From: Macrostomum lignano
Lineage: Eukaryota
Direction: 5' to 3'
Assembly: GCA_002269645.1 (NCBI GenBank)
Contig: NIVC01000303.1
Location: 503,819 to 567,818, forward strand
DNA length: 64,000 bases
Shown: one piece after another, positions 7,895 through 59,265 of the stretch
Position numbering within the stretch: position 1 is the stretch's first letter
Layout of the letters: each line of letters starts with the position of its first letter
Translations under genes and position numbers: made by a program
The notes under the pieces: generated by a model
Database searches by the model: none
The model's input: the letters and a program-made list of their open reading frames with translations, nothing else
What the model was told of the DNA's origin: nothing

Positions 7895-18559
<10,665 letters not shown>

Positions 18560-26339: not shown

Positions 26340-27010
26340 CCCAGATCCTTAGTAGCTGGGCCAGCCTCCCAGATCCTCAGTTGCTGGGCCAGCCTCCCAG
26401 ATCCTTAGTTGCTGGGCCAGCCTCCCAGATGCTCTGTTTCTGGGCCAGTCTCCCAGATCCTCAGTTGCTGGGCCAGCCTCACAGATCCTCAGTTGCTGGG
26501 CCAGCCTCTCAGAGTGTCAGTTGCTGGGCCAGCCTCCCAGACGCTCTGTTTCTGGGCCAGCCTCACAGATCCTCAGTTGCTGGGCCAGCCTCCCAGATCC
26601 TCAGTTGCTGTGCCATCCTCTCAGAGTGTCAGTTGCTGGGCCAGCCTTCCAGATCCTCAGTTGCTGGGCCAGCCTCACAGATCCTCAGTTGCTGGGCCAG
26701 CCTCCCAGATCCTCAGTTGCTGGGCCAGCCTCCCAGATCCTCAGTTGCTGTGCCATCCTCTCAGAGTGTCAGTTGCTGGGCCAGCCTTCCAGATCCTCAG
26801 TTGCTGGGCCAGCCTCACAGATCCTCAGTTGCTGGGCCAGCCTTCCAGATCCTCAGTTGCTGTGCCATCCTCTCAGAGTGTCAGTTGCTGGGCCAGCCTT
26901 CCAGATCCTCAGTTGCTGGGCCAGCCTCACAGATCCTCAGTTGCTGGGCCAGCCTTCCAGATCCTTAGTTGCTGGGCCAGCCTTCCAGATCCTCAGTTGC
27001 TGGGCCAGCC
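26340..27010. repeat. 28-bp minisatellite between PFDN1 and ECHDC3
   Basis: CCAGCCTCCCAGATCCTCAGTTGCTGGG units. Confidence 0.95.
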
Positions 27011-37725: not shown

Positions 37726-38509
37726 GTCCCTGGCCAGACTGCAAGTAGTGTATGATCAGATGGCTAGCAAGCAGTTCACATGCATGACCATGCAGATTAG
37801 AATAAGTTGTATGACTCGATTTTAAGAAAATCATGAGCCGCAGATCCTTGCAGACGAATCGCGGTGGTCAGCGAACTTTATACCTTTCTTAGAAGAAAAC
37901 GAGAGATGGATGAGAGGAGAGATGGGATGAGAGAAAAAAGCTGAGATGAGAATGGGATACCTTGAGCATATCGCGGATGGCTTATTATGAAGTTTCCAAC
38001 GACCCGATGCTCGTGTAGTTTGCTGGCCCCTGTAGCACAAGCTCTTGGAACAAGAGTTGTTTTGCATGTAAATTAATTCTCTTGTTTTCTTGTCTTCCGG
38101 CTAAAGAAAGCAATCTGCACAGCTGTCAATGTGGCTTCATCAAGTGAGTGATTAAGTTACATATGCGCCACGCGTTAATATGCTGGATTTGATATTTAAT
38201 CAGAGTCGAAAATTCTAAAGCACTGTAGACACATTGTGCGTTTATAAATTACGTGACTTGTAGATCTACATGTACTTTAGGCTCATGCGAGTTCGTGTCC
38301 TGAGAATATTTGAGAACAAAACTTTGGCTCGTGTCTTTTCAGAGAAGCGCTATCTATATACACTTGATTAAGCTTTATTCTTTATTCGATCCCCCCTAGA
38401 GAGAGAGACTTACGCACTGTAGCTACTTGGCTATGCGAGTTTCTATTACACACTGTCTTCGGCCATCTGGAAGAATTATCAACTTTTGAGTTGTTTTAAA
38501 AGGATCATG

Positions 38510-39925
38510 GGATTAGCGAGGCGCCAGATCAGGGGAATTAGCGAGGCGCCAGATCAGGGGAATTAGCGAGGCGCCAGATCAGGAGGGATTAGCGAGGCGC
38601 CAGATCAGAAGGGATTAGTGAGGCGCCAGATCAGAATGGATTAGCGAGGCGCCAGATCAGAATGGATTAGCGAGGCGCCAGATCAGGAGGGATTAGTGAG
38701 GCGCCAGATCAGGGGAATTAGCGAAGCGCCAGATCAGGGGAATTAGCGAAGCGCCAGATCAGAAGAGATTAGTGAGGCGCCAGATCAGAAGGGATTAGTG
38801 AGGCGCCAGATCAGAAGGGATTAGTGAGGCGCCAGATCAGAATGGATTAGCGAGGCGCCAGATCAGAATGGATTAGCGAGGCGCCAGATCAGGAGGGATT
38901 AGTGAGGCGCCAGATCAGAAGGGATTAGTGAGGCGCCAGATCAGAATGGATTAGCGAGGCGCCAGATCAGGAGGGATTAGTGAGGCGCCAGATCAGAATG
39001 GATTAGCGAGGCGCCAGATCAGGAGGGATTAGTGAGGCGCCAGATCAGAATGGATTAGCGAAGCGCCAGATCAGGAGGGATTAGTGAGGCGCCAGATCAG
39101 AATGGATTAGCGAGGCGCCAGATCAGAATGGATTAGCGAGGCGCCAGATCAGAATGGATTAGTGAGGCGCCAGATCAGAAGGGATTAGTGAGGCGCCAGA
39201 TCAGAATGGATTAGCGAGGCGCCAGATCAGGGGAATTAGCGAGGCGCCAGATCAGGGGAATTAGCGAGGCGCCAGATCAGAAGGGATTAGTGAGGCGCCA
39301 TATCAGAATGGATTAGCGAGGCGCCAGATCAGGAGGGATTAGTGAGGCGCCAGATCAGAATGGATTAGCGAGGCGCCAGATCAGAAGGGATTAGTGAGGC
39401 GCCAGATCAGAATGGATTAGCGAGGCGCCAGATCAGGAGGGATTAGTGAGGCGCCAGATCAGAATGGATTAGCGAGGCGCCAGATCAGAATGGATTAGTG
39501 AGGCGCCAGATCAGAATGGATTAGCGAGGCGCCAGATCAGAATGGATTAGTGAGGCGCCAGATCAGAAGGGATTAGTGAGGCGCCAGATTAGAATGGATT
39601 AGCGAGGCGCCAGATCAGGAGGGATTAGCGAGGCGCCAGATCAGGGGGATTAGCGAGGCGCCAGATCAGGAGTGATTAGTGAGGCACCAGATCAGAAGAG
39701 ATTAGCGAGGCGCCAGATCAGAAGGGATTAGCGAGGCGCCAGATCAGAATGGATTAGCGAGGCGCCAGATCAGAAGAGATTAGCGAGGCGCCAGATCAGA
39801 ATGGATTAGCGAGGCGCCAGATCAGAATGGATTAGCGAGGCGCCAGATCAGAAGAGATTAGCGAGGCGCCAGATCAGAATGGATTAGCGAGGCGCTAGAT
39901 CAGAACGGATTAGCGAGGCGCCAGT
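38510..39925. repeat. 25-26-bp minisatellite with variant units, about 1.4 kb
   Basis: Core TTAG(C/T)GAGGCGCCAGATCAG plus 5-6 variable nt. Confidence 0.96.
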
Positions 39926-41338: not shown

Positions 41339-44300
41339 ATGCTCAGACAGCATTATCTTTGTCTTCTAGCAGCAGTGTCAGCTGTCTGCCTCTGCGCCGC
41401 ATCCGACGCTGTTCTCAAAGCAGGAACGCTGACTCTTGGCGCTGTGTTGCCAAGTCGCAATGCTCAACTTCGTTCAGCATTCTATTTGGCGCTAAAACGG
41501 CGCCAAACAGATCCAAGTGGCGCCGTACAGTGGCGCCTAGCTGTGGTAGACGCTGCCAATCCGATGGAAATCCAGCGAGCAATACGTCGCGAACTTCAAG
41601 ACGTCGCCTGTCTTATAGCTGTAAGCAGCGAGTTGGACTCGATGAGTCACGTTGTTCATCTAGCTAGAAATCTCAGCCTGCCGGTTGTCATGGCAACAGC
41701 AGTAGCCAGCGGAGACGCCGGGGGATTCTACATGCGACCGAGTCTGGCGCCAGAGGCGGCGCTGAAGATTGCGCTGGGATTCGGCTGGCGCCAGGCCGTC
41801 TATCTGGTTAACAGCGCTGACGGTCTGGCCAGGGCTGCTCAGGCGGCTGCCACAGCTGCCCGATCGGGACTCGAACTCCGGACTGTCTACTTGCCGGCGA
41901 CAGAGGTGCCGCTACCCCGACGCTACTTGGATGTGCCAGATCTGGACGGCAAGCACCGAAGGCGGGTGGTGGTGGATCTGGAGCCGGCGGAGCAGCAGGT
42001 GCAACACCTGATGGCATCGCTGAGCGGAGCCGGGCTGAACAGGCGCGAGTTTCACTACCTGCTGCTCGATGGGGCGGCGGCGCAGCTGCCCACGGTGGGG
42101 CTGCTGTACAGCGGGGTGTCCGTGACTGGCCTGCAGCTGCTGGGGCTCGGGAGGCGGGAGGTGAGACATGGACAGATGTTGAGGGGCCAGAGTTCGATGA
42201 GGGCCAACCCCCAAGGCACAGAGAGTCTGACGATTAGAATGTCCGGGCCGTTGCACACCCTGTGTGTGCGAATGTCTGTTTGCGTACTGTATTGGTGCAC
42301 TTGTGTGTGCTCCGGAGTCAGCGGAATGGGTCGAGCTGCCTGACCGCTGGTGATGGGACGATCAAATCTCGGACACAATCCCTAATCCCATATCCGGACA
42401 AAATTCTCAATAGCATCTCGGACACAATCCGTAATCACATCCCGGACACAATACCTAATCACATCCCTGATACAATACCCAATCACATCCCGGACACAAT
42501 CCCCAATCACATCACGGACACAATCCCCAATCACATCCCGGACACAGTCCCCAATCACATCCCGGACACAATCCAAAAATCACATCCCTGATACAATACC
42601 CAATCACATCCCGGACACAATCCCCAATCACATCCCGGACACAATACCCAATCAAATCTCGGACACAATCCTCAATCACGTCCCGGACACAATCCCCAAT
42701 CACACCCCCGGACACAATCCCCAATCACATCCCGGACACTATCCCCAATCACATCCCGGACACAATCCCCAATCACATCCCTGATACAATACCCAATCAC
42801 ATCCCGGACACAATCCCCAATCACATCCCGGACACAATACCCAATCAAATCTCGGACACAATCCTCAATCATGTCCCGGACACAATCCCCAATCACATCC
42901 AAGGACACAATCCCCAATCACATCCCGGACACTATCCCCAATCACATCCCGGACACAATCCCCAATCACATCCCGGACACAATTTCCAATCACATCCCGG
43001 ACACAATACCCAATCAAATCTCGGACACAATACCCAATCATGTCCCGGACACAATCCCCAATCACATCCCTGACACAATACCCAATCACATCCCGGACAC
43101 AATTTCCAATCACATCCCGGACACAATACCCAATCAAATCTCGGACACAATACCCAATCACATCTCGGACACAATCCCCAATCACGTCCCGGACACAATT
43201 TCCAATCAAATCTCGGACACAATGCCTAATCACATCCCGGACACAATCCCCAATCACATCCCGGACACAATCCCCAATCACATCCCGGACACAATCCCCA
43301 ATCACATCCCGGACACAATACCCAATCGCATCTCGGACACAATCCCGGACACAATACCCAATCACATCCCGGACACAATCCCCAATCGCATCTCGGACAC
43401 AATCCCGGACACAATACCCAATCGCATCTCGGACACAATCCCGGACACAATACCCAATCGCATCTCGGACACAATCCCTGACACAATACACAATCGCATC
43501 TCGGACACAATCCCGGACACAATACCCAATCACATCTCGGACACAATCCACAATCACGTCCCGGACACAATCCTTAAACCACCCCCCGGACACTGCAGGT
43601 TCGCGACCTCAAGCGCCGCTGGGAGCTGATCAGTCAGCATGTTGAAACTCAACACCGGCAGCGCGAAGGCCACGGCGGCTCCTCTCCGCTTCCTCCTCCG
43701 TCGCTGCAGATGGTGGCTCTAGTCATGGACTCGGTGACCGCGGCGCTGACAGCAGCGACAGCAGCTCAGCTCGGCCTTAACGCGGCATCGTCGAGAACAA
43801 CAACAGAAGCCAGGAAACGAATGCGGTGGCATCTGGCCAACACCGTTGATTTCGTTGGCTACACCGGCCGAATCACCTTTCGAGGCGGCGGCAGTCAGCG
43901 GAGGACTAGCTTGTCGGTGCCGGTGCTGCAGTTGAACAGCCCGGACGGCTTCCGGCATCTGGACGATTGGCATTCGAACTCGACTTCGCAGCCGATGCAA
44001 CTGTCACCGGACGTTGCTCATGGCGGCGGATTCTTCGATAGCAGCGACAGTGACATCGGTGTCGGCTTCAGGGGGCGCCGGAACCGAACGGCGAAGTCGT
44101 CGCTGCGCTGGCCGAGACTCATCCGGGTGGTGACCATCGAGTCCAGGCCGTTCGTGCAGCCGAAAACTCCATCGTTAGCGACAGCAGCCGATGACGTCGG
44201 TAGCAACGACACCGCACCGTCTGCGTCGCCACGTCGTCTGCCGTTTGAAGGCTTCTGCATGGAGCTGCTGGAGCGAATCGCCGAACGAGTGGGCGGGCTG

Positions 44301-47300
44301 AAGTACTCGGTGCACCTTGTCGGCGACGGTCAGTACGGCGGCAGGAACTCCAGCGCCCCGGCAGCGGCACCGGAGGCGGACAAGTGGAACGGCATGATCG
44401 GCGAGCTGCTTCAAGACACCGCCGATGTCGCCTTTGCGCCGCTGACCATCAACACGGAGCGATCGAAGGTGGTGGACTTCACCGAGCCGTTTCTCACCTT
44501 TGGCATCTCAATTATGATTAAGAAGCCGCGCAAGGAGAAGCCGGGAGTTTTTGGATTCTTGCAGCCGCTGTCTCAGGTGAGGGGGCGTCGTCTGCTGTGC
44601 TGGGCTTTGTCCATGCTCTTTGAGCCCCAGGTTAACTGCCTAGCCGCTTTCTCCAGCCAGTTCTCACTTTTTTAACTTCGCACTTGTTGTCCGTCTTCTC
44701 TGCAAAGATTCTCTGCAAAAGAAATAGGACCTCTACTCGTAGAAACAGAAAACCAATGAGATAATTGTTGAGGGCCAACGTAAGTTATATTTAAATACTT
44801 AACACGTGCATAGTTTTTAATGTGCTTCTATTCAATAAATATCAATTATGAATATACTAGACATAGCAAGATTGTTTAGACAAAGAAGGTCATCTCATGT
44901 TAAAAATTCCATAATAAGAAAACCGCTGATGAACACTCGGTTAGAGGGTTTTTGTTCTCCGGAGTTAAGAATCTCCAGCCCGGAGATCCAACAAAAAAAT
45001 AGAATCTGGTTTAGGATCGCCCGATTGGACCAGACCGGACCATGCCTCGGAGACCCCACAACGGTAACGGATCTCCTATCGCGTAGATCCATAACTGTTT
45101 GTAGGCAATGAAGATCTTAAATCCTTGGATCGGTGACCCAAAGCTAGCCGGAGCCCCGGAGATTTAAAACCGTAACACCGGCGCCAATAAATCAATCACT
45201 CCAGAAACATCACAATTCGATTATTATTCGGCCTGCAGTGAATAAAATTAGGGTGCACTGAACACCTGCAGTCTCCCGTTCGAAACGTCAGCTACCACCA
45301 GCTGTTCACGTAGACCTCCCGTCACCACCGCCAGACCCAGCGGCCTGCTGAATCTGCCGTCTCCGCTGACGCTCTCGCCCGGAGTCCCCAGAGTCCACAG
45401 CAGCGACCCGTCGTCTGCAGCCACCGCTCGCACTGAGTGACCCCGCCATTCACTCACGAACAGGCGGCCTCTGCTGTCGACGGCCACATCATATGGAAAT
45501 TTAAACTGTTGGAGGTCGGAACGCTGAGTCGGGAAGGAGGCGACCAGCTGCTGGGTGTCGATGCGCACTCTGTGCACCTGATTGTGCTTCCAGTCTGTCA
45601 CCAGAATGCAGTTGTCGTGAGTCGCCAGGTTGCGCAGATCAGCATGAGGAAGCTGAGACAGCGTGATGACCGTCTCCATCTGCCAAGTCGCTTTGCTGAA
45701 TGCAGCAATTTTGTTTCCACTGGACACAAACACGAAGGCTACGTTGCTGCCGATTCCACCGATGTCACCGAAGGGCGGAATCGACGCACCGCACGACCGC
45801 TCAGGTCCGTCACTGTCACTGCGTCAGGCTGAGCAATGAACAACAGCTGACGGTCGCAGTGAAGGCCTTCAATGTCCTTCTTCCAGTCGATGTCGCAGTG
45901 GCACCGCAGCTTCCGTGAGCCGTCCACAGACAGCACCAGTAGGTGGATCTAGTTACTTTTTAAATTGAATGATGCAAGGACGCAGGGCTGAGGCAGAGCC
46001 TCGCTGCCGTCTCGCGCTGAGTCGGAGAAAACCACACGGCCTGAGCGGTCACCAACGAATCCGTTGGTGTCGCTGCACACAGCCAGCCATTGAACTGGGC
46101 CATCCAGCTTCACCTCGTGACTGAAGACCATCGGATCGAACAGCAGTCTCTCTCTCTCAGCAGCGTCAATCTCCTCGGATGTCGCGGTCACCGCAGCCTC
46201 TCTCGACCAGTCGCCCTCTTCGCTGCGTCTTGCACAAATGCCGACCAGCCGCTCGAGCTGGCCCAGAAGCCGCAGCTGCACCTCCTCATTGTCGCTCTGT
46301 TCTCTGAGCAGCCGCTCTGACCTCTCAAGGTCGGCCTCCAAGTCTCCAAGCGATTCGTGCATGGACTGGACCAGGCGAAGCAGCTCCGCCATGTCGCCTG
46401 CAGCCTTCGCCGTGGCCACCTCCTGCTTGTAGCTGGAGACGTCCTCGAGGTCCCGCTCGCACACACGCACTGCCTCAAGCACACCTGAGAGCTGGCCCGT
46501 CACCCTGCTACGAAACGAGTCGATGTGTTGCTGTACCAAATCGAATTTGTGATTGACCTCTTGCTGCTGCTGTTGGATGTCGAGAGCGAGACGACGCAGC
46601 GACTCAGCGTCTTGTCGGTGTCGCATCAGCGCTGCACGGCCAGCTGCACCTACTGCGCCCTGTGACTCTAGTGACTCTTGTGACTCTTGTGAGTCTTGTG
46701 AGTCTTGTGACTCTAGTGACTCTTGTGACTCTTGTGACTCTTGTGACTCTTGTGACTCTTGTGACTCTTGTGACTCTTGTGACTCTTGTGACTCTTGTGA
46801 CTCTTGTGAGTAGGCACGCAGCAGCTTGTCGACCTCCTCCTTGAGCTTGAATAGATTGGCCACATCGACACTGAGGTGTTCACTGCACATGTGGCAGCGG
46901 GAGAACGGAGCCACACCGACTGCAGCTTGGTCGCAGATGATGCAGAGAGGAGTTGGGGTAGCGGGAGGCGCGTCCGAACTCGAGCTGTCGCTGGAGTCTC
47001 TGAGGCTCATCTTGTGGGCGATCTGAATAACTGAGAGGGTGGGAGACTCAGGTCAGGTGGGAGACTCAGGTCAGGCGGGAGACAAGACCCATGAGGGAAA
47101 CATCAATTAAGAATGTCCTGCAATCGGATCACTCACACAGGAATGGAGAGATTAGGAATAATCGAGAACAGAATTCAGATAAAAAATAACCAGCTCACCT
47201 TCTGCAATTGCGCAAAGTCAGCTAGGGTGAAGCGCTGGGCTGCTGCAATCTCTAAAGTGGGGGCTCAACAGAGCCACAGTTGCTAATATAATTTAAACCT

Positions 47301-49373
47301 GAGCCCAGCAGCGGCGCTATCAGCAGTTGCCATGGTTGCTAATCTGCGGGACAGTCAGGGAGCAAGCAGAGCCACACTGCGCACAGATAAGGTGATTCGA
47401 TTGCACACAGATTCAAAGCTCTGTGCAGTGTGTATCTCCTTATCTTATATTTGAGCCAAACTCTACCTAAACACTATCTGGGATCTGGGATCTAGGATCT
47501 GGGATCTAGGATCTGGGATCTAGGATCTAGGATCTGGGATCTAGGATCTGGGATCTAGGATCTGGGATCTGGGATCTGGGATCTACATGCTCACATATGC
47601 TGCCCCATCCCTGACCCCAACTGAGCACAGGTGTGGCCCTACATGCTCACATGCGGCGCAGGGGTGATTGCCGGTCTGCACCTGTGCGCCAGACTCAGCC
47701 CTGTTGAGTGGCGCATCACAGACTCCGAGCAGCTGCAGCCCTGCAGTCTTCTGCTTCTGCGAAAGAGGCGCAGAGACTTCTCGCTGTTCAACTCGCTGTG
47801 GTTCGCGCTGGCCTCCATCGTCAACCAGAGTGTAGACATCTCGCCTCGCAGCTCAGGTGCCCGCCTGGTAACCAGCGTGTGGTGGTTCTTCACCCTGATC
47901 ATGATCGCTGACTACACCGCCATCCTGGCCGCCTCCCTGACAGTTGAGCTGCTGCGGACACCCATCGAGAGCTGGCCGGACCTGCTGGGAGCTCACGAGA
48001 CCAGCGGAATGTTGTTTGGCACCATCGCCTCGGGCTCGACTCAGGCCTTCTTTCTGAGCACCAAGATTTGGCCCTACAGCGGCATCGGGGCCGTGATGAG
48101 GAGCAACTCCGATGAGGTGCGGCTTGGGATTGGGGATTTAAGCTTGAGAATTGGGGATTGGGGATTTGGGATTTGAAATTGGGATTTGAGATTGGGATTT
48201 GGGATTGGGGATTTGAGTTGAGTATTCGGGAATGTGGTTGAGTATTTAGGGTTAGCGATTGCGATTTGGGGATTGAAGATTTGAAATTGTATACTTTAAG
48301 TTTTAATACGCTCGTACATTCCTGTGAACACTCCAAAACTCGTGAACACCACCGAGATCCCCGTGAACACCACCGAGATCCCCGTGAACACCATCGAGAT
48401 CTCCGTGAACACCAAAAGAGATACTCGTGAACACCTCGAAATCCCCGTGAACACTCCGAGATCCCCGTGAACACCTCGAAATCCCCGTGAACACTCCGAG
48501 ATCGCCGTGAACACCCAGAGATTCCGTGAACCCGGAGCCCCGCAAACCCGCCCAGGTGTACGCGAGCACCACAGCGGCCGGGGTGCAGCGAGTTCGCGAA
48601 TCCAACGGCCGCTACGCTTTCCTGCTGGAGTCGAAGATGAACGAATTCCACAACAACCGCGACCCCTGCGACACCATGATGGTCGGGCAGCCGTTCGGCG
48701 ACAACGGCTACGGGGTGGCCACCCAGCGCGGCTCGCCGCTCAGAGAGCTCTTCAACGATGCCATCCTGCAGCTGAGGGAGCAGCAGGTGCTGGCCGAGCT
48801 GTACAAGAAGTGGTGGATTGAGAAGGTAAAGGTCGGGAGTTCGAGTCCGAGATCTTGAGTACACCTGGCTGTACACAAATTAAAGAAATCAAATTCTACA
48901 TGTACTTAGGGCACTACATGCAATTTGCACCCATGAGAGGCCTGTGATGGGAGCACCGGTTTCCGTTGGCTGCTCCCCAGGGGTCAAGCAGTGATTGACT
49001 GCCCTTCCGCCTCAGCTCCCCTGAACCCTCAGCTACGGCATTCTTTGGGTCCAGTCTCGCACAGGGCCGGAGTTCGAACCCCGCTACTGCCAGCAATTGT
49101 CCCGAGCTCGAACCTCGCTACCACCCACAGGGCCAGTGCGCCACCGACGACTCTGACTCGAGCGACGCCGGCCAGTCGCCGCTGGCAGTCGTTAATGTGG
49201 CCGGTGTGTTCTACATCCTGGTGGCCGGTCTGGGCGCTGCGATGGCGGCGGCGCTGGTCGAGTCCGCGTGCGCCGCGGCGATGCGGCGGCGGAGAAATCG
49301 GCGACTGAGGCGGCGGCCGGAGATGGTGGCCGGCTGCGTCGGGGCGACATCGGCGGCTGGCGTCATCATGTAG
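41339..49373 (+). CDS. Ionotropic glutamate receptor, AMPA/kainate-like, about 930 aa; exons 41339-42160, 43599-44576, 47631-48116, 48556-48825, 49131-49373
   Basis: Signal peptide + ATD; S1 ([36 protein letters not shown]); M1-M3; S2 ([27 protein letters not shown]); M4 (NVAGVFYIL); all introns phase 0 GT-AG. Confidence 0.9.
42360..43590. repeat. 24-bp minisatellite in iGluR intron 1
   Basis: CCAATCACATCCCGGACACAATCC units. Confidence 0.96.
45248..47010 (-). pseudogene. Zn-finger(B-box-like)/coiled-coil/NHL-repeat gene, copy A, nested antisense in iGluR intron 2; in-frame TAG plus frameshift
   Basis: CIIC..CHMCSEH, (ESQ)n, coiled coil, NHL blades ([38 protein letters not shown]). Functional status unresolved. 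Confidence 0.7.
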
Positions 49374-49379
49374 CTCTTG

Positions 49380-49550
49380 GGGAGTTTGAGTAGCAGTTTG
49401 AGTAGCAGTTTGAGTAGCAGTTTGAGCAGCAGTTCGAGCAGTAGTTTGAGCACAGTTTGAGCAGCAGTTTGAGTAGCAGTTTTAGCAGCAGTTTGAGTAG
49501 CTGTTTGAGTTGCAGTTTGAGTAGCAGTTTTAGCAGCAGTTTGAGCACAA
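49380..49550. repeat. 12-bp repeat just after the iGluR stop (also 55465-55635)
   Basis: AGCAGTTTGAGT units. Confidence 0.9.
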
Positions 49551-50039
49551 GCAGCACAAACCACAGCTACAATAACTTCATCAAGATGCAGTCTTGGTGT
49601 GCAAATCGCATTTTCCGACTTGAATTCTGCATGCTGTTTGCTGCATGCCAGACTCACCTGTGAGCTCACCACCTGACTGAAATTGGTCACCGCAGACTTG
49701 CAGTGCGACAAAGGGAGACTAAAGCGCACATGGAAGGGAAATAACGTGTTTCCCAGAAAATAATTGAAGGCTGGCTATGATTGAAAATGAACTGCAAGAT
49801 GAGAAATCATGATTTTGTGGTAATCAAAATGACAAAATCTTTTGACAGAAGCAGATTTAGTTATTTTCTTTTTATATGTCATATAAGCAGCTGCATCATA
49901 AATTGTTTGCATGGCATAAAAATTAAAATGCAATTCAACTTCATTAGAAATAAAGTAAAAATCTTGTTCAACAACGTGTAGTAGCATGCATTGTAATTCT
50001 AGAAATTTTTGCGATAAATATACATGTATTCCAAATATA

Positions 50040-50429
50040 CGAGGGGTGTCCCAGAAATAGTGTCACCTTTGCCTGCCTCCACAAGTATTAATGTGTGTTA
50101 AAAAATCATATGCCCTAAAAGTTAGCGGCTTATTTTTGCTTTCAGACTGGAACAGATCTTGCAGCTGCTCTCTTGCAACTCTGTGCTTGATCAGCTCTGC
50201 TTGTGGCTTCCTTCTGAGTGAGCATAGAAGCACTATGCAGTGTGTATTTCTATGGCCAAGGGTATGCGAACAAATGCATGCTGCTTACAGCTTACAGCTG
50301 CTTATAAAAATCGGACTTTCGTGGCATGAAAGCTAAAATAAGCCGCTAACTTTTAGAGCATGATTTTTTAACACACATTAATACTTGTGGAAGCAAGAAA
50401 AAGTGACACTACTTCTGAGACACCCCTCG
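50040..50429. mobile_element. 390-bp mariner-type MITE, ~105-bp TIRs, TA TSD (duplicate at 56126-56515)
   Basis: TA|CGAGGGGTGTCCCAGAAATAGTGTCAC...GTGACACTACTTCTGAGACACCCCTCG|TA. Confidence 0.9.
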
Positions 50430-50653
50430 TAATAAGGTAAATTCCACGCGACTCTGTTTAAAATATTCTGGCCTCCGGAATGTTCCTTTAATTTAAAAAC
50501 TATAAATATAATAATGCACACGCGCAATCAAATAGTTGCAACCGTGGGCTCTACATTGCTCCAATTTTTTATTAATCGCCTTCAAATCATTTGAGTTCTC
50601 TACAGAAGCATCCGATCTGAACTCTACAGGAAGCTACACGAGTAGTAGAGGGA

Positions 50654-50910
50654 ATGTACACACCGCCGCGGGAAAGCGCGAATAGAATGGGACCTAGTAA
50701 GAGTAGGTAGCCGCTATTATTTAAAGACATAGAATGGACTCTGCCCGAGAGACCATAAAGGTTTTGTAAATTGTAGGTTTTCATAAATTTTGAGTGAGAG
50801 ATTCAGTGAGAATCTTTTCAGTAATAGAATGCGTGTGGTCATACATGTTAGCGCCACCGAAATTGAGTAAATTGGATTCCACACGGCTTTCCCTGCGGCA
50901 GTGTGCACAT
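50654..50910. mobile_element. Putative small non-autonomous element with ~24-bp imperfect TIRs (duplicate near 56740-56996)
   Basis: ATGTACACACCGCCGCGGGAAAGC ... GCTTTCCCTGCGGCAGTGTGCACAT; no clear TSD. Confidence 0.5.
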
Positions 50911-51325
50911 CTCTGAGTCTAATAGCTGTATGTGGTAATCCATAGCTAAATTGTACAAGTACTTTTTGTAAGAAATCAAGATTTTCAAGTGGAATTCAGG
51001 AATCAATTGTCGGTCACAGCGGCCACTCGGCACTGAGGCTGCAGCCGCACCCAAAATTGACTCAATTTAGTGAACTGGATTTAGGCGGAAAGTGTGCTCC
51101 CGGAAAGTTTAATATAATTGCTTAATACATGCATAATGTTTAATGTGCTTCTATTCAATAAATATCAATTCTGACATGCACAAGACATGATAAACATTTA
51201 TCAGACAAAGAAAGTCATCGCATTTAAAAAAAATTCATTAAAAAACTCGAACGAAAACCCGGCCTCCAACAAATCAATCACTCCAGAAACCTTCAGTTCG
51301 ATTATTATTCGGCAAGTGAATAAAA

Positions 51326-53097
51326 TCAGGATGCACTGAACACCTGCAGTCTCCTGTTGGAATCGTCAGCCACCACCAGCTGCTCGCGCGGACCTCCCGT
51401 CACCACCGCCAGACCCAGCGGCCTGCTGAATCTGCCGTCTCCGCTGACGCTCTCGCCCGGAGTCCCCAGAGTCCACAGCAGCGACCCGTCGTCTGCAGCC
51501 ACCGCTCGCACTGAGTGACCCCGCCATTCACTCACGAACAGGCGGCCTCTGCTGTCGACGGCCACATCATATGGAAATTTAAACTGTTGGAGGTCGGAAC
51601 GCTGAGTCGGGAAGGAGGCGACCAGCTGCTGGGTGTCGATGCGCACTCTGTGCACCTGATTGTGCTTCCAGTCTGTCACCAGAATGCAGTTGTCGTGAGT
51701 CGCCAGGTTGCGCAGATCAGCATGAGGAAGCTGAGACAGCGTGATGACCGTCTCCATCTGCCAAGTCGCTTTGCTGAATGCAGCAATTTTGTTTCCACTG
51801 GACACAAACACGAAGGCTACGTTGCTGCCGATTCCACCGATGTCACCGAAGGGCGGAATCGACGCACCGCACGACCGCTCAGGTCCGTCACTGTCACTGC
51901 GTCAGGCTGAGCAATGAACAACAGCTGACGGTCGCAGTGAAGGCCTTCAATGTCCTTCTTCCAGTCGATGTCGCAGTGGCACCGCAGCTTCCGTGAGCCG
52001 TCCACAGACAGCACCAGTAGGTGGATCTAGTTACTTTTTAAATTGAATGATGCAAGGACGCAGGGCTGAGGCAGAGCCTCGCTGCCGTCTCGCGCTGAGT
52101 CGGAGAAAACCACACGGCCTGAGCGGTCACCAACGAATCCGTTGGTGTCGCTGCACACAGCCAGCCATTGAACTGGGCCATCCAGCTTCACCTCGTGACT
52201 GAAGACCATCGGATCGAACAGCAGTCTCTCTCTCTCAGCAGCGTCAATCTCCTCGGATGTCGCGGTCACCGCAGCCTCTCTCGACCAGTCGCCCTCTTCG
52301 CTGCGTCTTGCACAAATGCCGACCAGCCGCTCGAGCTGGCCCAGAAGCCGCAGCTGCACCTCCTCATTGTCGCTCTGTTCTCTGAGCAGCCGCTCTGACC
52401 TCTCAAGGTCGGCCTCCAAGTCTCCAAGCGATTCGTGCATGGACTGGACCAGGCGAAGCAGCTCCGCCATGTCGCCTGCAGCCTTCGCCGTGGCCACCTC
52501 CTGCTTGTAGCTGGAGACGTCCTCGAGGTCCCGCTCGCACACACGCACTGCCTCAAGCACACCTGAGAGCTGGCCCGTCACCCTGCTACGAAACGAGTCG
52601 ATGTGTTGCTGTACCAAATCGAATTTGTGATTGACCTCTTGCTGCTGCTGTTGGATGTCGAGAGCGAGACGACGCAGCGACTCAGCGTCTTGTCGGTGTC
52701 GCATCAGCGCTGCACGGCCAGCTGCACCTACTGCGCCCTGTGACTCTAGTGACTCTTGTGACTCTTGTGAGTCTTGTGAGTCTTGTGACTCTAGTGACTC
52801 TTGTGACTCTTGTGACTCTTGTGACTCTTGTGACTCTTGTGACTCTTGTGACTCTTGTGACTCTTGTGACTCTTGTGAGTCTTGTGAGTCTTGTGAGTAG
52901 GCACGCAGCAGCTTGTCGACCTCCTCCTTGAGCTTGAATAGATTGGCCACATCGACACTGAGGTGTTCACTGCACATGTGGCAGCGGGAGAACGGAGCCA
53001 CACCGACTGCAGCTTGGTCGCAGATGATGCAGAGAGGAGTTGGGGTAGCGGGAGGCGCGTCCGAACTCGAGCTGTCGCTGGAGTCTCTGAGGCTCAT
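51326..53097 (-). pseudogene. NHL gene copy B (chimeric: C-type 3' end, A-type 5' part)
   Basis: Near-identical to A and C, same TAG and frameshift; diagnostic sites given in findings. Confidence 0.7.
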
Positions 53098-53717
53098 CTT
53101 GTGGGCGATCTGAATAACTGAGAGGGTGGGAGACTCAGGTCAGGTGGGAGACTCAGGTCAGGCGGGAGACAAGACCCATGAGGGAAACATCAATTAAGAA
53201 TGTCCTGCAATCGGATCACTCACACAGGAATGGAGAGATTAGGAATAATCGAGAACAGAATTCAGATAAAAAATAACCAGCTCACCTTCTGCAATTGCGC
53301 AAAGTCAGCTAGGGTGAAGCGCTGGGCTGCTGCAATCTCTAAAGTGGGGGCTCAACAGAGCCACAGTTGCTAATATAATTTAAACCTGAGCCCAGCAGCG
53401 GCGCTATCAGCAGTTGCCATGGTTGCTAATCTGCGGGACAGTCAGGGAGCAAGCAGAGCCACACTGCGCACAGATAAGGTGATTCGATTGCACACAGATT
53501 CAAAGCTCTGTGCAGTGTGTATCTCCTTATCTTATATTTGAGCCAAACTCTACCTAAACACTATCTGGGATCTGGGATCTAGGATCTGGGATCTAGGATC
53601 TGGGATCTAGGATCTAGGATCTGGGATCTAGGATCTGGGATCTAGGATCTGGGATCTGGGATCTGGGATCTACATGCTCACATATGCTGCCCCATCCCTG
53701 ACCCCAACTGAGCACAG

Positions 53718-55459
53718 GTGTGGCCCTACATGCTCACATGCGGCGCGGGGTGATTGCCGGTCTGCACCTGTGCGCCAGACTCAGCCCTGTTGAGTGGCGC
53801 ATCACAGACTCCGAGCAGCTGCAGCCCTGCAGTCTTCTGCTTCTGCGAAAGAGGCGCAGAGACTTCTCGCTGTTCAACTCGCTGTGGTTCGCGCTGGCCT
53901 CCATCGTCAACCAGAGTGTAGACATCTCGCCTCGCAGCTCAGGTGCCCGCCTGGTAACCAGCGTGTGGTGGTTCTTCACCCTGATCATGATCGCTGACTA
54001 CACCGCCATCCTGGCCGCCTCCCTGACAGTTGAGCTGCTGCGGACACCCATCGAGAGCTGGCCGGACCTGCTGGGAGCTCACGAGACCAGCGGAATGTTG
54101 TTTGGCACCATCGCCTCGGGCTCGACTCAGGCCTTCTTTCTGAGCACCAAGATTTGGCCCTACAGCGGCATCGGGGCCGTGATGAGGAGCAACTCCGATG
54201 AGGTGCGGCTTGGGATTGGGGATTTAAGCTTGAGAATTGGGGATTGGGGATTTGGGATTTGAAATTGGGATTTGAGATTGGGATTTGGGATTGGGGATTT
54301 GAGTTGAGTATTCGGGAATGTGGTTGAGTATTTAGGGTTAGCGATTGCGATTTGGGGATTGAAGATTTGAAATTGTATACTTTAAGTTTTAATACGCTCG
54401 TACATTCCTGTGAACACTCCAAAACTCGTGAACACCACCGAGATCCCCGTGAACACCACCGAGATCCCCGTGAACACCATCGAGATCTCCGTGAACACCA
54501 AAAGAGATACTCGTGAACACCTCGAAATCCCCGTGAACACTCCGAGATCCCCGTGAACACCTCGAAATCCCCGTGAACACTCCGAGATCGCCGTGAACAC
54601 CCAGAGATTCCGTGAACCCGGAGCCCCGCAAACCCGCCCAGGTGTACGCGAGCACCACAGCGGCCGGGGTGCAGCGAGTTCGCGAATCCAACGGCCGCTA
54701 CGCTTTCCTGCTGGAGTCGAAGATGAACGAATTCCACAACAACCGCGACCCCTGCGACACCATGATGGTCGGGCAGCCGTTCGGCGACAACGGCTACGGG
54801 GTGGCCACCCAGCGCGGCTCGCCGCTCAGAGAGCTCTTCAACGATGCCATCCTGCAGCTGAGGGAGCAGCAGGTGCTGGCCGAGCTGTACAAGAAGTGGT
54901 GGATTGAGAAGGTAAAGGTCGGGAGTTCGAGTCCGAGATCTTGAGTACACCTGGCTGTACACAAATTAAAGAAATCAAATTCTACATGTACTTAGGGCAC
55001 TACATGCAATTTGCACCCATGAGAGGCCTGTGATGGGAGCACCGGTTTCCGTTGGCTGCTCCCCAGGGGTCAAGCAGTGATTGACTGCCCTTCCGCCTCA
55101 GCTCCCCTGAACCCTCAGCTACGGCATTCTTTGGGTCCAGTCTCGCACAGGGCCGGAGTTCGAACCCCGCTACTGCCAGCAATTGTCCCGAGCTCGAACC
55201 TCGCTACCACCCACAGGGCCAGTGCGCCACCGACGACTCTGACTCGAGCGACGCCGGCCAGTCGCCGCTGGCAGTCGTTAATGTGGCCGGTGTGTTCTAC
55301 ATCCTGGTGGCCGGTCTGGGCGCTGCGATGGCGGCGGCGCTGGTCGAGTCCGCGTGCGCCGCGGCGATGCGGCGGCGGAGAAATCGGCGACTGAGGCGGC
55401 GGCCGGAGATGGTGGCCGGCTGCGTCGGGGCGACATCGGCGGCTGGCGTCATCATGTAG
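53718..55459 (+). pseudogene. Duplicate of iGluR exons 3-5, with 1-bp deletion in M1
   Basis: Copy of 47631-49373 lacking the A at 47660 (GGCGCAGGGG becomes GGCGCGGGG); has no 5' exons of its own. Confidence 0.85.
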
Positions 55460-57410
55460 CTCTTGGGGAGTTTGAGTAGCAGTTTGAGTAGCAGTTTGAG
55501 TAGCAGTTTGAGCAGCAGTTCGAGCAGTAGTTTGAGCACAGTTTGAGCAGCAGTTTGAGTAGCAGTTTTAGCAGCAGTTTGAGTAGCTGTTTGAGTTGCA
55601 GTTTGAGTAGCAGTTTTAGCAGCAGTTTGAGCACAAGCAGCACAAACCACAGCTACAATAACTTCATCAAGATGCAGTCTTGGTGTGCAAATCGCATTTT
55701 CCGACTTGAATTCTGCATGCTGTTTGCTGCATGCCAGACTCACCTGTGAGCTCACCACCTGACTGAAATTGGTCACCGCAGACTTGCAGTGCGACAAAGG
55801 GAGACTAAAGCGCACATGGAAGGGAAATAACGTGTTTCCCAGAAAATAATTGAAGGCTGGCTATGATTGAAAATGAACTGCAAGATGAGAAATCATGATT
55901 TTGTGGTAATCAAAATGACAAAATCTTTTGACAGAAGCAGATTTAGTTATTTTCTTTTTATATGTCATATAAGCAGCTGCATCATAAATTGTTTGCATGG
56001 CATAAAAATTAAAATGCAATTCAACTTCATTAGAAATAAAGTAAAAATCTTGTTCAACAACGTGTAGTAGCATGCATTGTAATTCTAGAAATTTTTGCGA
56101 TAAATATACATGTATTCCAAATATACGAGGGGTGTCCCAGAAATAGTGTCACCTTTGCCTGCCTCCACAAGTATTAATGTGTGTTAAAAAATCATATGCC
56201 CTAAAAGTTAGCGGCTTATTTTTGCTTTCAGACTGGAACAGATCTTGCAGCTGCTCTCTTGCAACTCTGTGCTTGATCAGCTCTGCTTGTGGCTTCCTTC
56301 TGAGTGAGCATAGAAGCACTATGCAGTGTGTATTTCTATGGCCAAGGGTATGCGAACAAATGCATGCTGCTTACAGCTTACAGCTGCTTATAAAAATCGG
56401 ACTTTCGTGGCATGAAAGCTAAAATAAGCCGCTAACTTTTAGAGCATGATTTTTTAACACACATTAATACTTGTGGAAGCAAGAAAAAGTGACACTACTT
56501 CTGAGACACCCCTCGTAATAAGGTAAATTCCACGCGACTCTGTTTAAAATATTCTGGCCTCCGGAATGTTCCTTTAATTTAAAAACTATAAATATAATAA
56601 TGCACACGCGCAATCAAATAGTTGCAACCGCGGGCTCTACATTGCTCCAATTTTTTATTAATCGCCTTCAAATCATTTGAGTTCTCTACAGAAGCATCCG
56701 ATCTGAACTCTACAGGAAGCTACACGAGTAGTAGAGGGAATGTACACACCGCCGCGGGAAAGCGCGAATAGAATGGGACCTAGTAAGAGTAGGTAGCCGC
56801 TATTATTTAAAGACATAGAATGGACTCTGCCCGAGAGACCATAAAGGTTTTGTAAATTGTAGGTTTTCATAAATTTTGAGTGAGAGATTCAGTGAGAATC
56901 TTTTCAGTAATAGAATGCGTGTGGTCATACATGTTAGCGCCACCGAAATTGAGTAAATTGGATTCCACACGGCTTTCCCTGCGGCAGTGTGCACATCTCT
57001 GAGTCTAATAGCTGTATGTGGTAATCCATAGCTAAATTGTACAAGTACTTTTTGTAAGAAATCAAGATTTTCAAGTGGAATTCAGGAATCAATTGTCGGT
57101 CACAGCGGCCACTCGGCACTGAGGCTGCAGCCGCACCCAAAATTGACTCAATTTAGTGAACTGGATTTAGGCGGAAAGTGTGCTCCCGGAAAGTTTAATA
57201 TAATTGCTTAATACATGCATAATGTTTAATGTGCTTCTATTCAATAAATATCAATTCTGACATGCACAAGACATGATAAACATTTATCAGACAAAGAAAG
57301 TCATCGCATTTAAAAAAATTCATTAAAAAACTCGAACGAAAACCCGGCCTCCAACAAATCAATCACTCCAGAAACCTTCAGTTCGATTATTATTCGGCAA
57401 GTGAATAAAA

Positions 57411-59074
57411 TCAGGATGCACTGAACACCTGCAGTCTCCTGTTGGAATCGTCAGCCACCACCAGCTGCTCGCGCGGACCTCCCGTCACCACCGCCAGACC
57501 CAGCGGCCTGCTGAATCTGCCGTCTCCGCTGACGCTCTCGCCCGGAGTCCCCAGAGTCCACAGCAGCGACCCGTCGTCTGCAGCCACCGCTCGCACTGAG
57601 TGACCCCGCCATTCACTCACGAACAGGCGGCCTCTGCTGTCGACGGCCACATCATATGGAAATTTAAACTGTTGGAGGTCGGAACGCTGAGTCGGGAAGG
57701 AGGCGACCAGCTGCTGGGTGTCGATGCGCACTCTGTGCACCTGATTGTGCTTCCAGTCTGTCACCAGAATGCAGTTGTCGTGAGTCGCCAGGTTGCGCAG
57801 ATCAGCATGAGGAAGCTGAGACAGCGTGATGACCGTCTCCATCTGCCAAGTCGCTTTGCTGAATGCAGCAATTTTGTTTCCACTGGACACAAACACGAAG
57901 GCTACGTTGCTGCCGATTCCACCGATGTCACCGAAGGGCGGAATCGACGCACCGCACGACCGCTCAGGTCCGTCACTGTCACTGCGTCAGGCTGAGCAAT
58001 GAACAACAGCTGACGGTCGCAGTGAAGGCCTTCAATGTCCTTCTTCCAGTCGATGTCGCAGTGGCACCGCAGCTTCCGTGAGCCGTCCACAGACAGCACC
58101 AGTAGGTGGATCTAGTTACTTTTTAAATTGAATGATGCAAGGACGCAGGGCTGAGGCAGAGCCTCGCTGCCGTCTCGCGCTGAGTCGGAGAAAACCACAC
58201 GGCCTGAGCGGTCACCAACGAATCCGTTGGTGTCGCTGCACACAGCCAGCCATTGAACTGGGCCATCCAGCTTCACCTCGTGACTGAAGACCATCGGATC
58301 GAACAGCAGTCTCTCTCTCTCAGCAGCGTCAATCTCCTCGGATGTCGCGGTCACCGCAGCCTCTCTCGACCAGTCGCCCTCTTCGCTGCGTCTTGCACAA
58401 ATGCCGACCAGCCGCTCGAGCTGGCCCAGAAGCCGCAGCTGCACCTCCTCATTGTTGCTCTGTTCTCTGAGCAGCCGCTCTGACCTCTCAAGGTCGGCCT
58501 CCAAGTCTCCAAGCGATTCGTGCATGGACTGGACCAGGCGAAGCAGCTCCGCCATGTCGCCTGCAGCCTTCGCCGTGGCCACCTCCTGCTTGTAGCTGGA
58601 GACGTCCTCGAGGTCCCGCTCGCACACACGCACTGCCTCAAGCACACCTGAGAGCTGGCCCGTCACCCTGCTACGAAACGAGTCGATGTGTTGCTGTACC
58701 AAATCGAATTTGTGATTGACCTCTTGCTGCTGCTGTTGGATGTCGAGAGCGAGACGACGCAGCGACTCAGCGTCTTGTCGGTGTCGCATCAGCGCTGCAC
58801 GGCCAGCTGCACCTACTGCGCCCTGTGACTCTAGTGACTCTTGTGACTCTTGTGACTCTTGTGAGTCTTGTGAGTAGGCACGCAGCAGCTCGTCGACCTC
58901 CTCCTTGAGCTTGAATAGATTGGCCACATCGACACTGAGGTGTTGACTGCACATGTGGCAGCGGGAGAACGGAGCCACACCGACTGCAGCTTGGTCGCAG
59001 ATGATGCAGAGAGGAGTTGGGGTAGCGGGAGGCGCGTCCGAACTCGAGCTGTCGCTGGAGTCTTCAAGGCTCAT
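57411..59074 (-). pseudogene. NHL gene copy C (short ESQ tract, distinct 5' flank)
   Basis: ATG at 59074 preceded by TTTCAG acceptor; same TAG and frameshift. Confidence 0.7.
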
Positions 59075-59265
59075 TGTTAGATAGACTAGCAGCTGAAACA
59101 CGGGTTAAGCAAAAAAGTTATTGATGACACATTAGACGAAGAGAAACTATGAGAAGTTGAGGATAAGAAGATAAGTAGGATAAGTAGTTAGCTTTGGGCA
59201 CTGAATGTCAAGTGTATTTTTAAATGCTTGTAGTCACACTACTTAGACGGTTCAGTAGTATAAAA

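Follow-up and report, generated by a model that had tools for sequence, protein, structure and literature searches.

Locus organization and gene structure

The window analysed here is a stretch of 64,000 nucleotides of Macrostomum lignano DNA (NCBI GenBank assembly GCA_002269645.1, contig NIVC01000303.1, positions 503,819 to 567,818 of the forward strand), within which all coordinates are counted. It holds an iGluR gene of five exons, a coiled-coil/NHL-repeat gene and a tandem duplication (Table 1). The iGluR gene encodes a protein of 932 amino acids, made up of a signal peptide, ATD, S1, M1, M2, M3, S2, M4 and a short tail; all exon junctions are GT-AG and in phase 0, and there are no internal stops. 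The gene is an intact, divergent family member that by its sequence probably gates differently, and not a new kind of receptor.

Table 1. Coordinates of the iGluR gene, its motifs and the surrounding features in the window
Feature	Position	Strand	Content
iGluR exon 1	41339..42160	+	Start codon, signal peptide and first part of ATD; GTGAGA donor after 42160
iGluR exon 2	43599..44576	+	End of ATD, S1 half of ligand-binding domain (Y520, APLTINTER), pre-M1; AG acceptor, GTGAGG donor, phase 0; supported by tblastn of P0001, P0004 and P0018
iGluR exon 3	47631..48116	+	M1, M2 pore loop, M3, start of S2 (GTIASGST); 162 codons; AG acceptor, GTGCGG donor
M2 pore loop	47796..47852	+	19 residues; N665 (Q/R/N site), S667 (on G588) and D669 (+4 acidic site)
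M3 motif	47910..47936	+	DYTAILAAS vs SYTANLAAF; within an 11-residue segment at 47907-47939
iGluR exon 4	48556..48825	+	Remainder of S2, with E705; 90 codons; AG acceptor, GTAAAG donor; supported by tblastn
iGluR exon 5	49131..49373	+	GQC (second S2 disulfide Cys), M4, short Arg-rich C-tail; AG acceptor; TAG stop at 49371-49373; supported by tblastn of P0002
Coiled-coil/NHL-repeat gene, copy a of three	45248..47010	-	Antisense, nested in iGluR intron 2; ORFs 45248-45733 and 45949-47010; Pfam NHL, E = 5.7e-10
Tandem duplication	45174..58873		6.08-kb unit, 2.25 units; each unit holds the NHL gene and iGluR exons 3-5
iGluR copy 2, exons 3-5	53718..55459	+	53718-54202, 54642-54911, 55217-55459

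Pfam detected ANF_receptor (aa 47-373, the ATD), Lig_chan-Glu_bd (aa 449-584, E = 5e-30) and Lig_chan (aa 600-886) in the protein, and the domain order ATD - S1 - M1 - M2 re-entrant loop - M3 - S2 - M4 was recovered by Pfam, by the alignment to GluA3 and by AF2. The AF2 monomer model of the core (pLDDT 72.6) has M1, the pore helix, M3 and M4 in order, and all of its top Foldseek matches were AMPAR LBD-TMD chains (E about 1e-38); the structure model named as a check in the original prediction thus returned the AMPAR fold and topology. This monomer informs on fold and topology only, and side-chain geometry was taken from published GluA2 structures.

Two Arg-rich stretches are present, RKRRR in the M1-M2 loop (47760-47774) and 11 residues after M4 (49284-49316). 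We take both to resemble RXR-type ER-retention signals, by prediction only. RXR signals enforce heteromeric assembly in other channels, and the stretches would fit a subunit that needs partners.

Tandem duplication and the partial second copy

Self-BLAST of the duplication gave 99.5% identity over 7.6 kb, and with its left edge excluded just 7 differences were counted in about 7.4 kb. The NHL copy in the middle combines sequence of the outer two, a chimeric pattern of the kind left by unequal crossing-over. Exon 2 is single copy because it lies upstream of the duplication, and iGluR copy 2 is limited to exons 3-5 and lacks the exons for the ATD and S1. It is 99.9% identical to copy 1, and its peptide is the same save for a 1-nt deletion after 53746 that causes a frameshift and an immediate stop in M1. 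The original prediction had used the agreement of both genomic copies as an argument against read error; this argument is weak, because agreement is expected, and says little, for a near-identical, frameshifted partial duplicate. An identical M2-M3 peptide occurs in three UniProt models from M. lignano (A0A1I8FHB0, A0A1I8GU24 and A0A1I8J562), which are better independent support for the motifs than copy 2. The A0A1I8FHB0 model skips part of M1 via mini-introns, consistent with a frameshifted template of the copy-2 kind. For annotation, it follows that public gene models at this locus are mis-fused or mis-spliced, and that a 6-kb tandem duplication produced a partial second iGluR copy.

Ligand-binding site

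The claim that the glutamate-binding residues are intact was borne out by alignment of the S1 and S2 contacts to GluA, in which all contact residues are present. Y520 lies in GDGQYGG, P478, T480 and R485 in APLTINTER (44436-44462), S654 and T655 in GTIASGST (48018-48041), and E705 and M708 in a 10-residue segment at 48619-48648; Y814 is also present. The residues tested for alpha-amino-acid and glutamate binding (Arg485, an acidic residue at 705, T480, S654/T655 and Y450) were all found, in a 27-residue segment and GDGQYGG aligned to GluA. The S2 disulfide pair C718/C773 is kept as well (PCDTMMVG and EKGQC).

Pore loop and M3 motif

The reported M2 and M3 changes lie in exon 3, where frame 3 of the + strand translates without interruption across the M2-M3 region. 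The HMMER alignment to GluA3 (9hpg) covers 490-913 and runs without gaps through M2-M3. It places N665 (AAC, 47823-47825) on Q586, the Q/R/N site, S667 (47829-47831) on G588, which it replaces, and D669 (47835-47837) on D590, the +4 acidic site, which is kept. In M3, D694, I698 and S702 replace S615, N619 and F623 of GluA2, while Y, T, A, L, A and A are kept. Translation and alignment therefore bore out the three reported changes: an NMDA-like Asn occupies the Q/R/N site, Ser has taken the place of the filter Gly, and SYTANLAAF is non-canonical. These lineage-specific changes extend to pre-M1, where S516 is changed to G and D519 to Q. The linker differs from GluA by R628L/M629L/V630R. The M3 codons GAC, ATC and TCC are each one base from TAC, AAC and TTC; each motif change took one base substitution, except Q586 to N, which took two.

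SYTANLAAF is not strictly conserved in this protein, since positions 1, 5 and 9 are changed and 6/9 match. Its Asn5 is among the best-conserved positions (PMC6307864). The rule of Ramos-Vicente et al. 2018 for inclusion among the iGluRs calls for at least 4/9 SYTANLAAF residues (PMC6307864), of which six are kept here. The description of the M3 gate as rewritten was overstated: pore-facing T617, A621 and T625, hinge A618 and the Lurcher residue A622 are unchanged, and the three changes, at i, i+4 and i+8, all lie on a single, outward helix face. The same applies to the pore loop, in which Q587 and the +4 Asp are kept (filter NQSVD) and each filter change is found separately in relatives with a canonical M3.

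The rarity of these states was assessed in 145 relatives from outside M. lignano among the 150 best matches in a set of 1.84 billion representative proteins. Exact YTANLAAF is present in 126 of these 145. Asn5 and Phe9 are each kept in 140/145; Ile occurs at the former position in none and Ser at the latter in 2, while Asp occurs at motif position 1 in none. Among the same relatives, the Q586 position is Gln in 98/126 and Asn in 1, and the G588 position is Gly in 119/126 and Ser in 2.

Family position

The best solved relatives of the protein are GluA3, GluA1, GluA4 and GluA2 (E about 1e-125), and all 60 best PDB sequence matches and all 50 best Foldseek matches are GluA1-4. In an NJ tree of 37 proteins and 410 core columns, the window protein and A0A1I8IHC4 are sisters (100% support) within a flatworm clade that includes Cichlidogyrus and Hymenolepis proteins (100% support). 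Of the phylogenetic placement called for earlier, the flatworm clade is thus firm, and support for joining it to AMPA-like or kainate-like groups does not exceed 32%. By sequence, the protein is a member of a flatworm-specific, AMPA-like (AKDF-type) clade, within which the Asn at the Q/R/N site is read as having arisen from Gln. An NMDA-type subunit was rejected: the Asn is present but no GluN is among the best sequence or fold matches. A variant IR of protostomes was likewise rejected, as the R, T and E contacts and the ATD are all present. The contig L001, source of P0003, is AT-rich genomic DNA whose exon starts past the Q/R/N site and is uninformative there.

Between the paralog A0A1I8IHC4 ('Glutamate receptor', 898 aa, P0052) and the window protein, identity is 48% over the whole length and about 63% within the S1-M4 core. 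Both have Asn at the Q/R/N site (VVNQGID in the paralog), both have lost the SYTANLAAF Asn, and the TVELLRTPI linker, KKWWIEKGQC and the ligand residues are common to the two. The paralog differs in keeping the filter Gly, F623 and pre-M1 S516, in having Tyr at S615 (not Asp) and Thr at N619 (not Ile), and in being without the Arg-rich M1-M2 loop and tail. The other flatworm relatives, Cichlidogyrus casuarinus 'Glutamate receptor 1' (KAL3319324.1), Hymenolepis diminuta VDL57446.1 and the Logan protein P0053, resemble the window protein in the IMIA(Y/F)YTA context, with Tyr or Phe in place of the motif Ser, and in PCxTMMVG, but have Gln at the Q/R/N site and exact YTANLAAF. The protein of Cichlidogyrus, a monogenean, also has Ser at G588 (VQQSVD). 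Vertebrate GluA1-4 share the domain order, identical or conservative glutamate contacts, the +4 Asp and M4 N791. They differ in the filter, which in the AMPA class has Q or edited R in a QQGCD-type sequence and here reads NQSVD, in M3 (SYTANLAAF, here DYTAILAAS) and in pre-M1 (here S516G and D519Q).

Extracellular collar and functional analogues

In the portions of PMC10584687 and PMC10705377 that describe GluA2 inhibitor pockets, the perampanel pocket is lined by S516, D519, P520, Y616, N619, L620, F623, L624 and S615', and the GYKI pocket by S516, N619, S615, Y616, N791, F623 and P520. Going by these descriptions, all five changes outside the filter, at the S615, N619, F623, S516 and D519 positions, fall on GluA2 extracellular-collar residues. 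Two of the positions, S615 and S516, were mutated in GluA2 (S615A/C/Y and S516X) according to the portions of PMC5430913 that treat collar mutants, where S615A/C/Y gave slow, weakly desensitising currents and slowed deactivation. S615D, N619I and F623S are not among the GluA2 collar mutants given in those portions of PMC5430913, PMC10584687 and PMC10705377.

Human NMDA receptor M3 disease variants offer a second comparison, with N changed to I as here, N changed to T as in the paralog, and F replaced by a residue that has no aromatic ring. With GluN1-N650I the glutamate EC50 falls to 0.037 uM, over ten times lower than in the wild type, and deactivation has a time constant of 1753 ms; agonist potency is likewise raised more than tenfold by GluN2B-N649T/S and GluN1-F654C, and all of these receptors still conduct (PMC10973091). 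Unlike the state found here, in which three changes are fixed together in a non-NMDA flatworm subunit, these are single de novo pathogenic gain-of-function changes. The mutant data are largely from NMDA receptors, and single mutants cannot predict the effect of three combined collar changes that include a buried Asp.

Interpretation

We favour, at a probability of about 0.55, a complete and apparently functional divergent iGluR that binds glutamate, conducts cations and has its gating shifted by a remodelled collar. Of the options in the original prediction, a divergent channel with altered gating or selectivity is the best supported. Ca2+ permeation is supported by an Asn at the Q/R/N site, and polyamine block by that Asn together with the +4 Asp (PMC12226733); both residues are present here, which suggests Ca2+ permeability and polyamine sensitivity in a subunit that would still bind glutamate and conduct cations. 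The remodelled collar may shift the closed-open equilibrium, so that agonists would be more potent, deactivation would be slower and/or desensitisation weaker, and some opening might occur without agonist. Sensitivity to perampanel- and GYKI-type inhibitors would be lost with the changed collar.

A bolder and tentative reading, drawn by analogy with the disease variants, is that of a naturally 'pre-activated' receptor, in which the equivalent of N650I is fixed in a healthy animal together with two further collar changes on the same face and one in pre-M1. Such a receptor might sense ambient glutamate tonically or with ultra-high affinity, deactivating slowly and passing Ca2+, or it might be a partly constitutive leak channel.

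It is doubtful that the protein is instead an obligate auxiliary or modulatory subunit, which would bind glutamate and join canonical flatworm subunits but be non-conducting alone or only tune heteromers. The Arg-rich stretches in the M1-M2 loop and after M4, presumed RXR-like, would suit such a role, as would the sister paralog with its intermediate motif states and the Asp at S615, an inter-subunit M3 contact, which could disfavour homotetramers. The M. lignano iGluR repertoire is also large, with about 67 predicted genes vs 12 human homologs (PMC3447372). Against this, nothing is altered at the pore-facing M3 residues, Q587 or the +4 Asp, the sequence bears no mark of lost conduction, and both NMDA and AMPA receptors still conduct when they carry an equivalent single substitution (PMC10973091, and PMC5430913 in the portions treating collar mutants). 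The non-conducting modulatory subunit of the original prediction is hence not favoured, GluN1 N to I, GluN2B N to T/S and GluN1 F to C being conducting, gain-of-function changes (PMC10973091).

We hold it improbable that the gene is a recently inactivated or unexpressed copy drifting neutrally, with the motif changes marking the onset of decay in one redundant member of a family that has expanded, in a genome that was duplicated not long ago. Rate evidence was taken from protein-level relative-rate counts and from the distribution of differences, in place of dN/dS. The ATD has evolved faster than in the paralog (56 vs 31 unique changes), which together with the frameshift and stop in M1 of the tandem copy, the mini-introns of A0A1I8FHB0 and the few base substitutions behind the motif changes would agree with decay. 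The same holds for transcript support, of which none was found: word-indexed protein searches returned no spliced near-identical Logan or transcriptome protein, a silence that means little because these searches also missed the UniProt models, and an exact look-up of the exon-3 ORF gave no match. On the other side, the 932-codon frame is intact over five exons with canonical splice sites, no ligand contact and neither disulfide Cys has been lost, and the three M3 changes share one structural face and are not random. The core rate is about equal to that of the intact paralog, with 29-43 unique changes in S1-M4 on the window lineage vs 23-32 on the paralog, a difference that is not significant for 3/5 outgroups. 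In A0A1I8J562, which is roughly 97% identical, 16/561 residues differ but none of the 125 aligned residues spanning aa 638-762, where the M2-M3 peptide lies unchanged (P about 0.018 if differences fell evenly).

A sequencing or assembly artefact as the source of the motifs is scarcely credible. The region is repeat-rich, and its 99.9%-identical copies differ by single-base indels of the long-read-error type, including one in a homopolymer at 51226. The motifs, however, were changed by base substitution and not by indels, and the same motif residues recur in the two window copies and in three UniProt proteins that were predicted separately. Of these proteins, A0A1I8J562 differs at 16 other residues and is therefore another allele or locus. 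The sister paralog also has N at the Q/R/N site and has lost the M3 Asn. Read error was rejected on the agreement of independent gene models.

Significance

The collar is the interface of pre-M1, M3 and M4. Through it ligand binding is coupled to gate opening, the antiepileptic perampanel binds there, and human GRIN and GRIA disease variants are concentrated in it. If expressed and functional, the gene would be a natural experiment on this part of iGluRs. Apart from this, it adds another lineage-specific divergent member to a large, well-known family. If the pre-activated reading is true, S615D, F623S and S516G would act as natural compensators, and from them one could learn how the closed-open equilibrium depends on the collar. 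The M. lignano pair YTATLAAF (paralog) and DYTAILAAS (this gene) would offer graded natural states for structure-function work, and M. lignano is genetically tractable by RNAi and transgenesis, so that the role of the subunit is testable in vivo.

Gene structure and fold

The receptor gene, modelled with relatives as guides, comprises five exons (table) separated by introns that are all GT-AG and phase 0, and its 932-aa product contains no internal stops. The protein runs from a signal peptide through the ATD, S1, M1-M2-M3, S2 and M4 to a short Arg-rich tail; Pfam assigns ANF_receptor to the ATD, Lig_chan-Glu_bd to S1 and Lig_chan over the M1-M4 region. Its best solved relatives are GluA3, GluA1, GluA4 and GluA2 (E about 1e-125). 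Of the checks proposed with the original prediction, a structure model and a phylogeny were run. The AF2 model of the S1-M4 core (mean pLDDT 72.6; LBD 80-94, membrane helices 50-77) shows sequential M1, pore helix, M3 and M4, and has an AMPA receptor-like fold according to Foldseek, the 50 best matches all being AMPA receptor LBD-TMD chains.

The window is eukaryotic DNA whose introns are full of mini- and microsatellites. Such repeats occupy every receptor intron and the 3' flank (for example a 24-bp unit x45, 7-bp x16, 20-bp x9 and 12-bp x14), and similar arrays occur elsewhere in the window. Several ORFs inside the long enoyl-CoA hydratase intron had no Pfam match and may be mobile-element remnants.

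Features of the receptor locus and its surroundings in the window
Feature	Position	Strand	Basis or remark
M2 pore loop	47796-47852	+	frame 3, translation
M3 motif segment	47907-47939	+	frame 3, translation
iGluR exon 1	41339-42160	+
iGluR exon 2	43599-44576	+
iGluR exon 3	47631-48116	+
iGluR exon 4	48556-48825	+
iGluR exon 5	49131-49373	+
RKRRR	47760-47774		cytoplasmic M1-M2 loop
Arg-rich stretch	49284-49316		just past M4
Exons 3-5, copy 2	53718-55459
Tandem duplication	45174-58873		self-comparison of window
NHL gene copy 1	45248-47010	-	nested antisense in receptor intron 2
NHL gene copy 2 (middle)	51330-53100	-
NHL gene copy 3	57411-59101	-	after second unit
Coding 9-bp repeat, (SQE)n	46661-46809		in NHL gene
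Receptor intron and 3' flank repeats	42361-43573, 47476-47584, 48126-48217, 48341-48531, 49383-49545
Similar arrays elsewhere	1323-1857, 10051-11345, 13754-16542, 21351-22142, 26340-27010, 27508-28793, 38503-39924
FERM-domain protein	8219-9284	+	Pfam
CH_2 (sperm flagellar protein-like) domain protein	22173-22835	-	Pfam
Enoyl-CoA hydratase, split by long intron	27084-27500 and 34704-35045	+	Pfam
Several ORFs, 86-158 aa	30293-33121	-
RRM protein	59266-60453	-	Pfam
CPSF_A-domain C-terminus (DDB1/SF3B3-like)	62534-63094	-	Pfam

Pore loop and M3

The original prediction held that this iGluR keeps its glutamate-binding residues while its pore loop and M3 gate are rewritten. Translation confirmed the M2 and M3 readings, both segments aligned to GluA3 without gaps (HMMER), and every predicted ligand residue in S1 and S2 was found. 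In this alignment the predicted Asn at the Q/R/N site is N665 (GluA2 Q586) and the Ser replacing the filter Gly is S667 (G588); Q666 and V668 occupy filter positions Q587 and C589, and D669 the +4 acidic site D590. In M3, D694, I698 and S702 correspond to S615, N619 and F623, which are positions 1, 5 and 9 of SYTANLAAF. Y450, Y732, M708 and the C718/C773 pair are also kept by residue mapping. In codon terms, each of the three M3 changes is one base substitution (TAC to GAC, AAC to ATC and TTC to TCC); G588S likewise takes one, and Q586N two.

Being spaced i, i+4 and i+8, the M3 changes lie on one helix face. Between them Y616, T617, A618, L620, A621 and A622 are unchanged, as are T625, V626 and E627. 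In GluA2 the gate is lined by T617, A621, T625 and M629 (Leu in the window protein), with A618 as gating hinge and A622 as Lurcher site. In published structures, GluA2 S615, N619 and F623 belong to the extracellular collar, whose pocket also includes pre-M1 S516, F517, D519 and P520, M3 Y616, L620 and L624, and M4 N791, and binds perampanel and GYKI-52466 (PMC10584687, PMC10705377). The window protein carries G for S516 and Q for D519 in pre-M1, with P512, F517, P520 and N791 retained; its sister paralog in M. lignano, A0A1I8IHC4, differs from it in retaining S516 and F623. The M3 motif is altered, as predicted, but the changes fall on collar residues, so the collar rather than the gate is remodelled.

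Relatives and classification

The 932-aa protein was scored against 1.84 billion representative proteins, and M2 and M3 were read in the best 150; counts cover the 145 relatives from outside M. lignano among these (126 for M2 positions). Exact YTANLAAF occurs in 126/145. Asn5 is retained in 140 (Ile in none), Phe9 in 140 (Ser in two, one a dust-mite kainate-like receptor), and Ser at position 1 in 128 (Asp in none). For M2, Gln occupies the Q586 position in 98/126, Gly that of G588 in 119/126, and Asp or Glu position 590 in 115/126. These counts agree with the published conservation ranking, in which SYTANLAAF residues two, four and five are best conserved (Ramos-Vicente et al. 2018, PMC6307864).

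The sister paralog reads VVNQGIDLSPRS and AYYTATLAAFL. The wider flatworm clade, including Cichlidogyrus and Hymenolepis proteins and the Logan protein P0053, has IA(Y/F)YTANLAAF, with Tyr/Phe already replacing the motif Ser; the Cichlidogyrus filter is VQQSVD, and Asn is found at the Q/R/N site of kainate-like receptors from cestodes and trematodes too, alongside a canonical M3. The window changes are thus not isolated. In the NJ tree the window protein and A0A1I8IHC4 are sisters (100% support) within a flatworm clade that itself has 100% support; by similarity the protein is AMPA-like, but in the tree the clade's attachment to AMPA-like or kainate-like groups has at most 32% support. Apart from strict SYTANLAAF conservation it shows the defining features of the iGluR superfamily, and it passes the 4-of-9 SYTANLAAF inclusion rule (PMC6307864). 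Identities as an NMDA subunit or a variant IR were rejected.

Predicted function

Most of the changes have experimental analogues. With GluA2 S615A, S615C and S615Y the non-desensitised current was 27-fold larger, and deactivation and desensitisation were slowed about 5.7-fold (PMC5430913). GluN1-N650I, which matches I698 in both motif position and residue change, lowers the glutamate EC50 more than tenfold from wild type, to 0.037 uM, with a deactivation time constant of 1753 ms; GluN2B-N649T/S, the state of the paralog, and GluN1-F654C raise agonist potency more than tenfold, and 28 of 48 M3 variants are gain of function and conduct (PMC10973091). At the Q/R/N site, Asn supports permeation by Ca2+ and, when combined with the +4 Asp, block by polyamines (PMC12226733).

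With these analogues, the most likely reading is a conducting, glutamate-binding subunit with altered gating and permeation (probability about 0.55). As such it would belong to a glutamate-gated cation channel permeable to Ca2+, its gating equilibrium shifted towards high potency, slow kinetics and, possibly, some constitutive activity; sensitivity to perampanel-class inhibitors would be lost. The analogues are single mutants and the window protein combines three changes, including Asp at an inter-subunit contact. The original prediction, which offered either a divergent channel or a non-conducting modulatory subunit, is partly supported.

A partner-dependent modulatory subunit seems rather unlikely. 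The two Arg-rich stretches, absent from the paralog, resemble RXR ER-retention motifs and may be such signals, which would fit a subunit obliged to assemble with partners.

Tandem duplication and database models

The duplication has a period of 6082 bp and 2.25 units; its left edge is diverged over 140 bp, and outside this the two complete units show 7 differences in about 7.4 kb (~99.9% identical). Every unit contains iGluR exons 3-5 and, in antisense, a coiled-coil/NHL-repeat gene (Pfam NHL). Because the single-copy exons 1-2 (ATD and S1) lie upstream, the first NHL gene sits inside receptor intron 2. The middle NHL copy is a chimera: its left edge is that of the right-hand copy and its right end that of the left-hand copy, the pattern that unequal crossing-over between two older paralogs of the gene would leave. 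The NHL genes have a Cys/His-rich N-terminus and look TRIM-NHL-like by eye, and the (SQE)n repeat differs in length among copies.

In copy 2, exon 3 is one base short, the A present at 47660 being missing after 53746, and this brings an immediate stop in M1 (...CGAG-stop). Both copies are intact in UniProt A0A1I8GU24, which spans both units, so the deletion reflects allelic or strain variation, or else an error of the assembly. This broken duplicate and an accelerated ATD (56 vs 31 relative-rate counts, window vs paralog) would suit a silent or decaying gene, and with the roughly 67 iGluR-like genes of M. lignano (PMC3447372) redundancy is plentiful. Protein collections searched for a transcript product yielded no spliced counterpart, in a scan that also missed the UniProt models described below, and the exon-3 ORF gave no exact match. 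Such decay is improbable, however: reading frame, splice sites, and ligand and structural residues are intact, the M2-M3 peptide is retained in a diverged second copy, and unique changes in the S1-M4 core (29-43 vs 23-32 in the paralog) differ non-significantly with 3/5 outgroups.

The closest database protein is from M. lignano, and the M2-M3 peptide is identical in UniProt models A0A1I8FHB0, A0A1I8GU24 and A0A1I8J562 of that species, which assigns the window to M. lignano or something very close to it. Set against 41339-55459, these gene models are wrong: a fusion of 2154 aa runs across both tandem units and the antisense NHL gene between them, and another model drops part of M1 and of S2 via spurious mini-introns. 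In its clean form, the 932-aa, five-exon model was absent from the databases searched; the sequence itself is already in UniProt, as uncharacterised, mis-predicted models. A0A1I8J562 differs at 16/561 aligned residues and at 0/125 from M2 into S2 (aa 638-762; P about 0.018 under an even fall of differences), and is the strongest independent support for the motifs among the UniProt models. Read error had been discounted originally on the agreement of both genomic copies; they do agree, but trivially, being near-identical tandem duplicates, and it is the UniProt models that make a sequence artefact highly implausible.

Pore loops have commonly changed as iGluRs evolved (PMC12226733), and divergent SYTANLAAF motifs were already known from Lambda and Phi iGluRs (PMC6307864). 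The novelty here lies in describing a subunit, otherwise AMPA-like, whose collar face is coherently remodelled.
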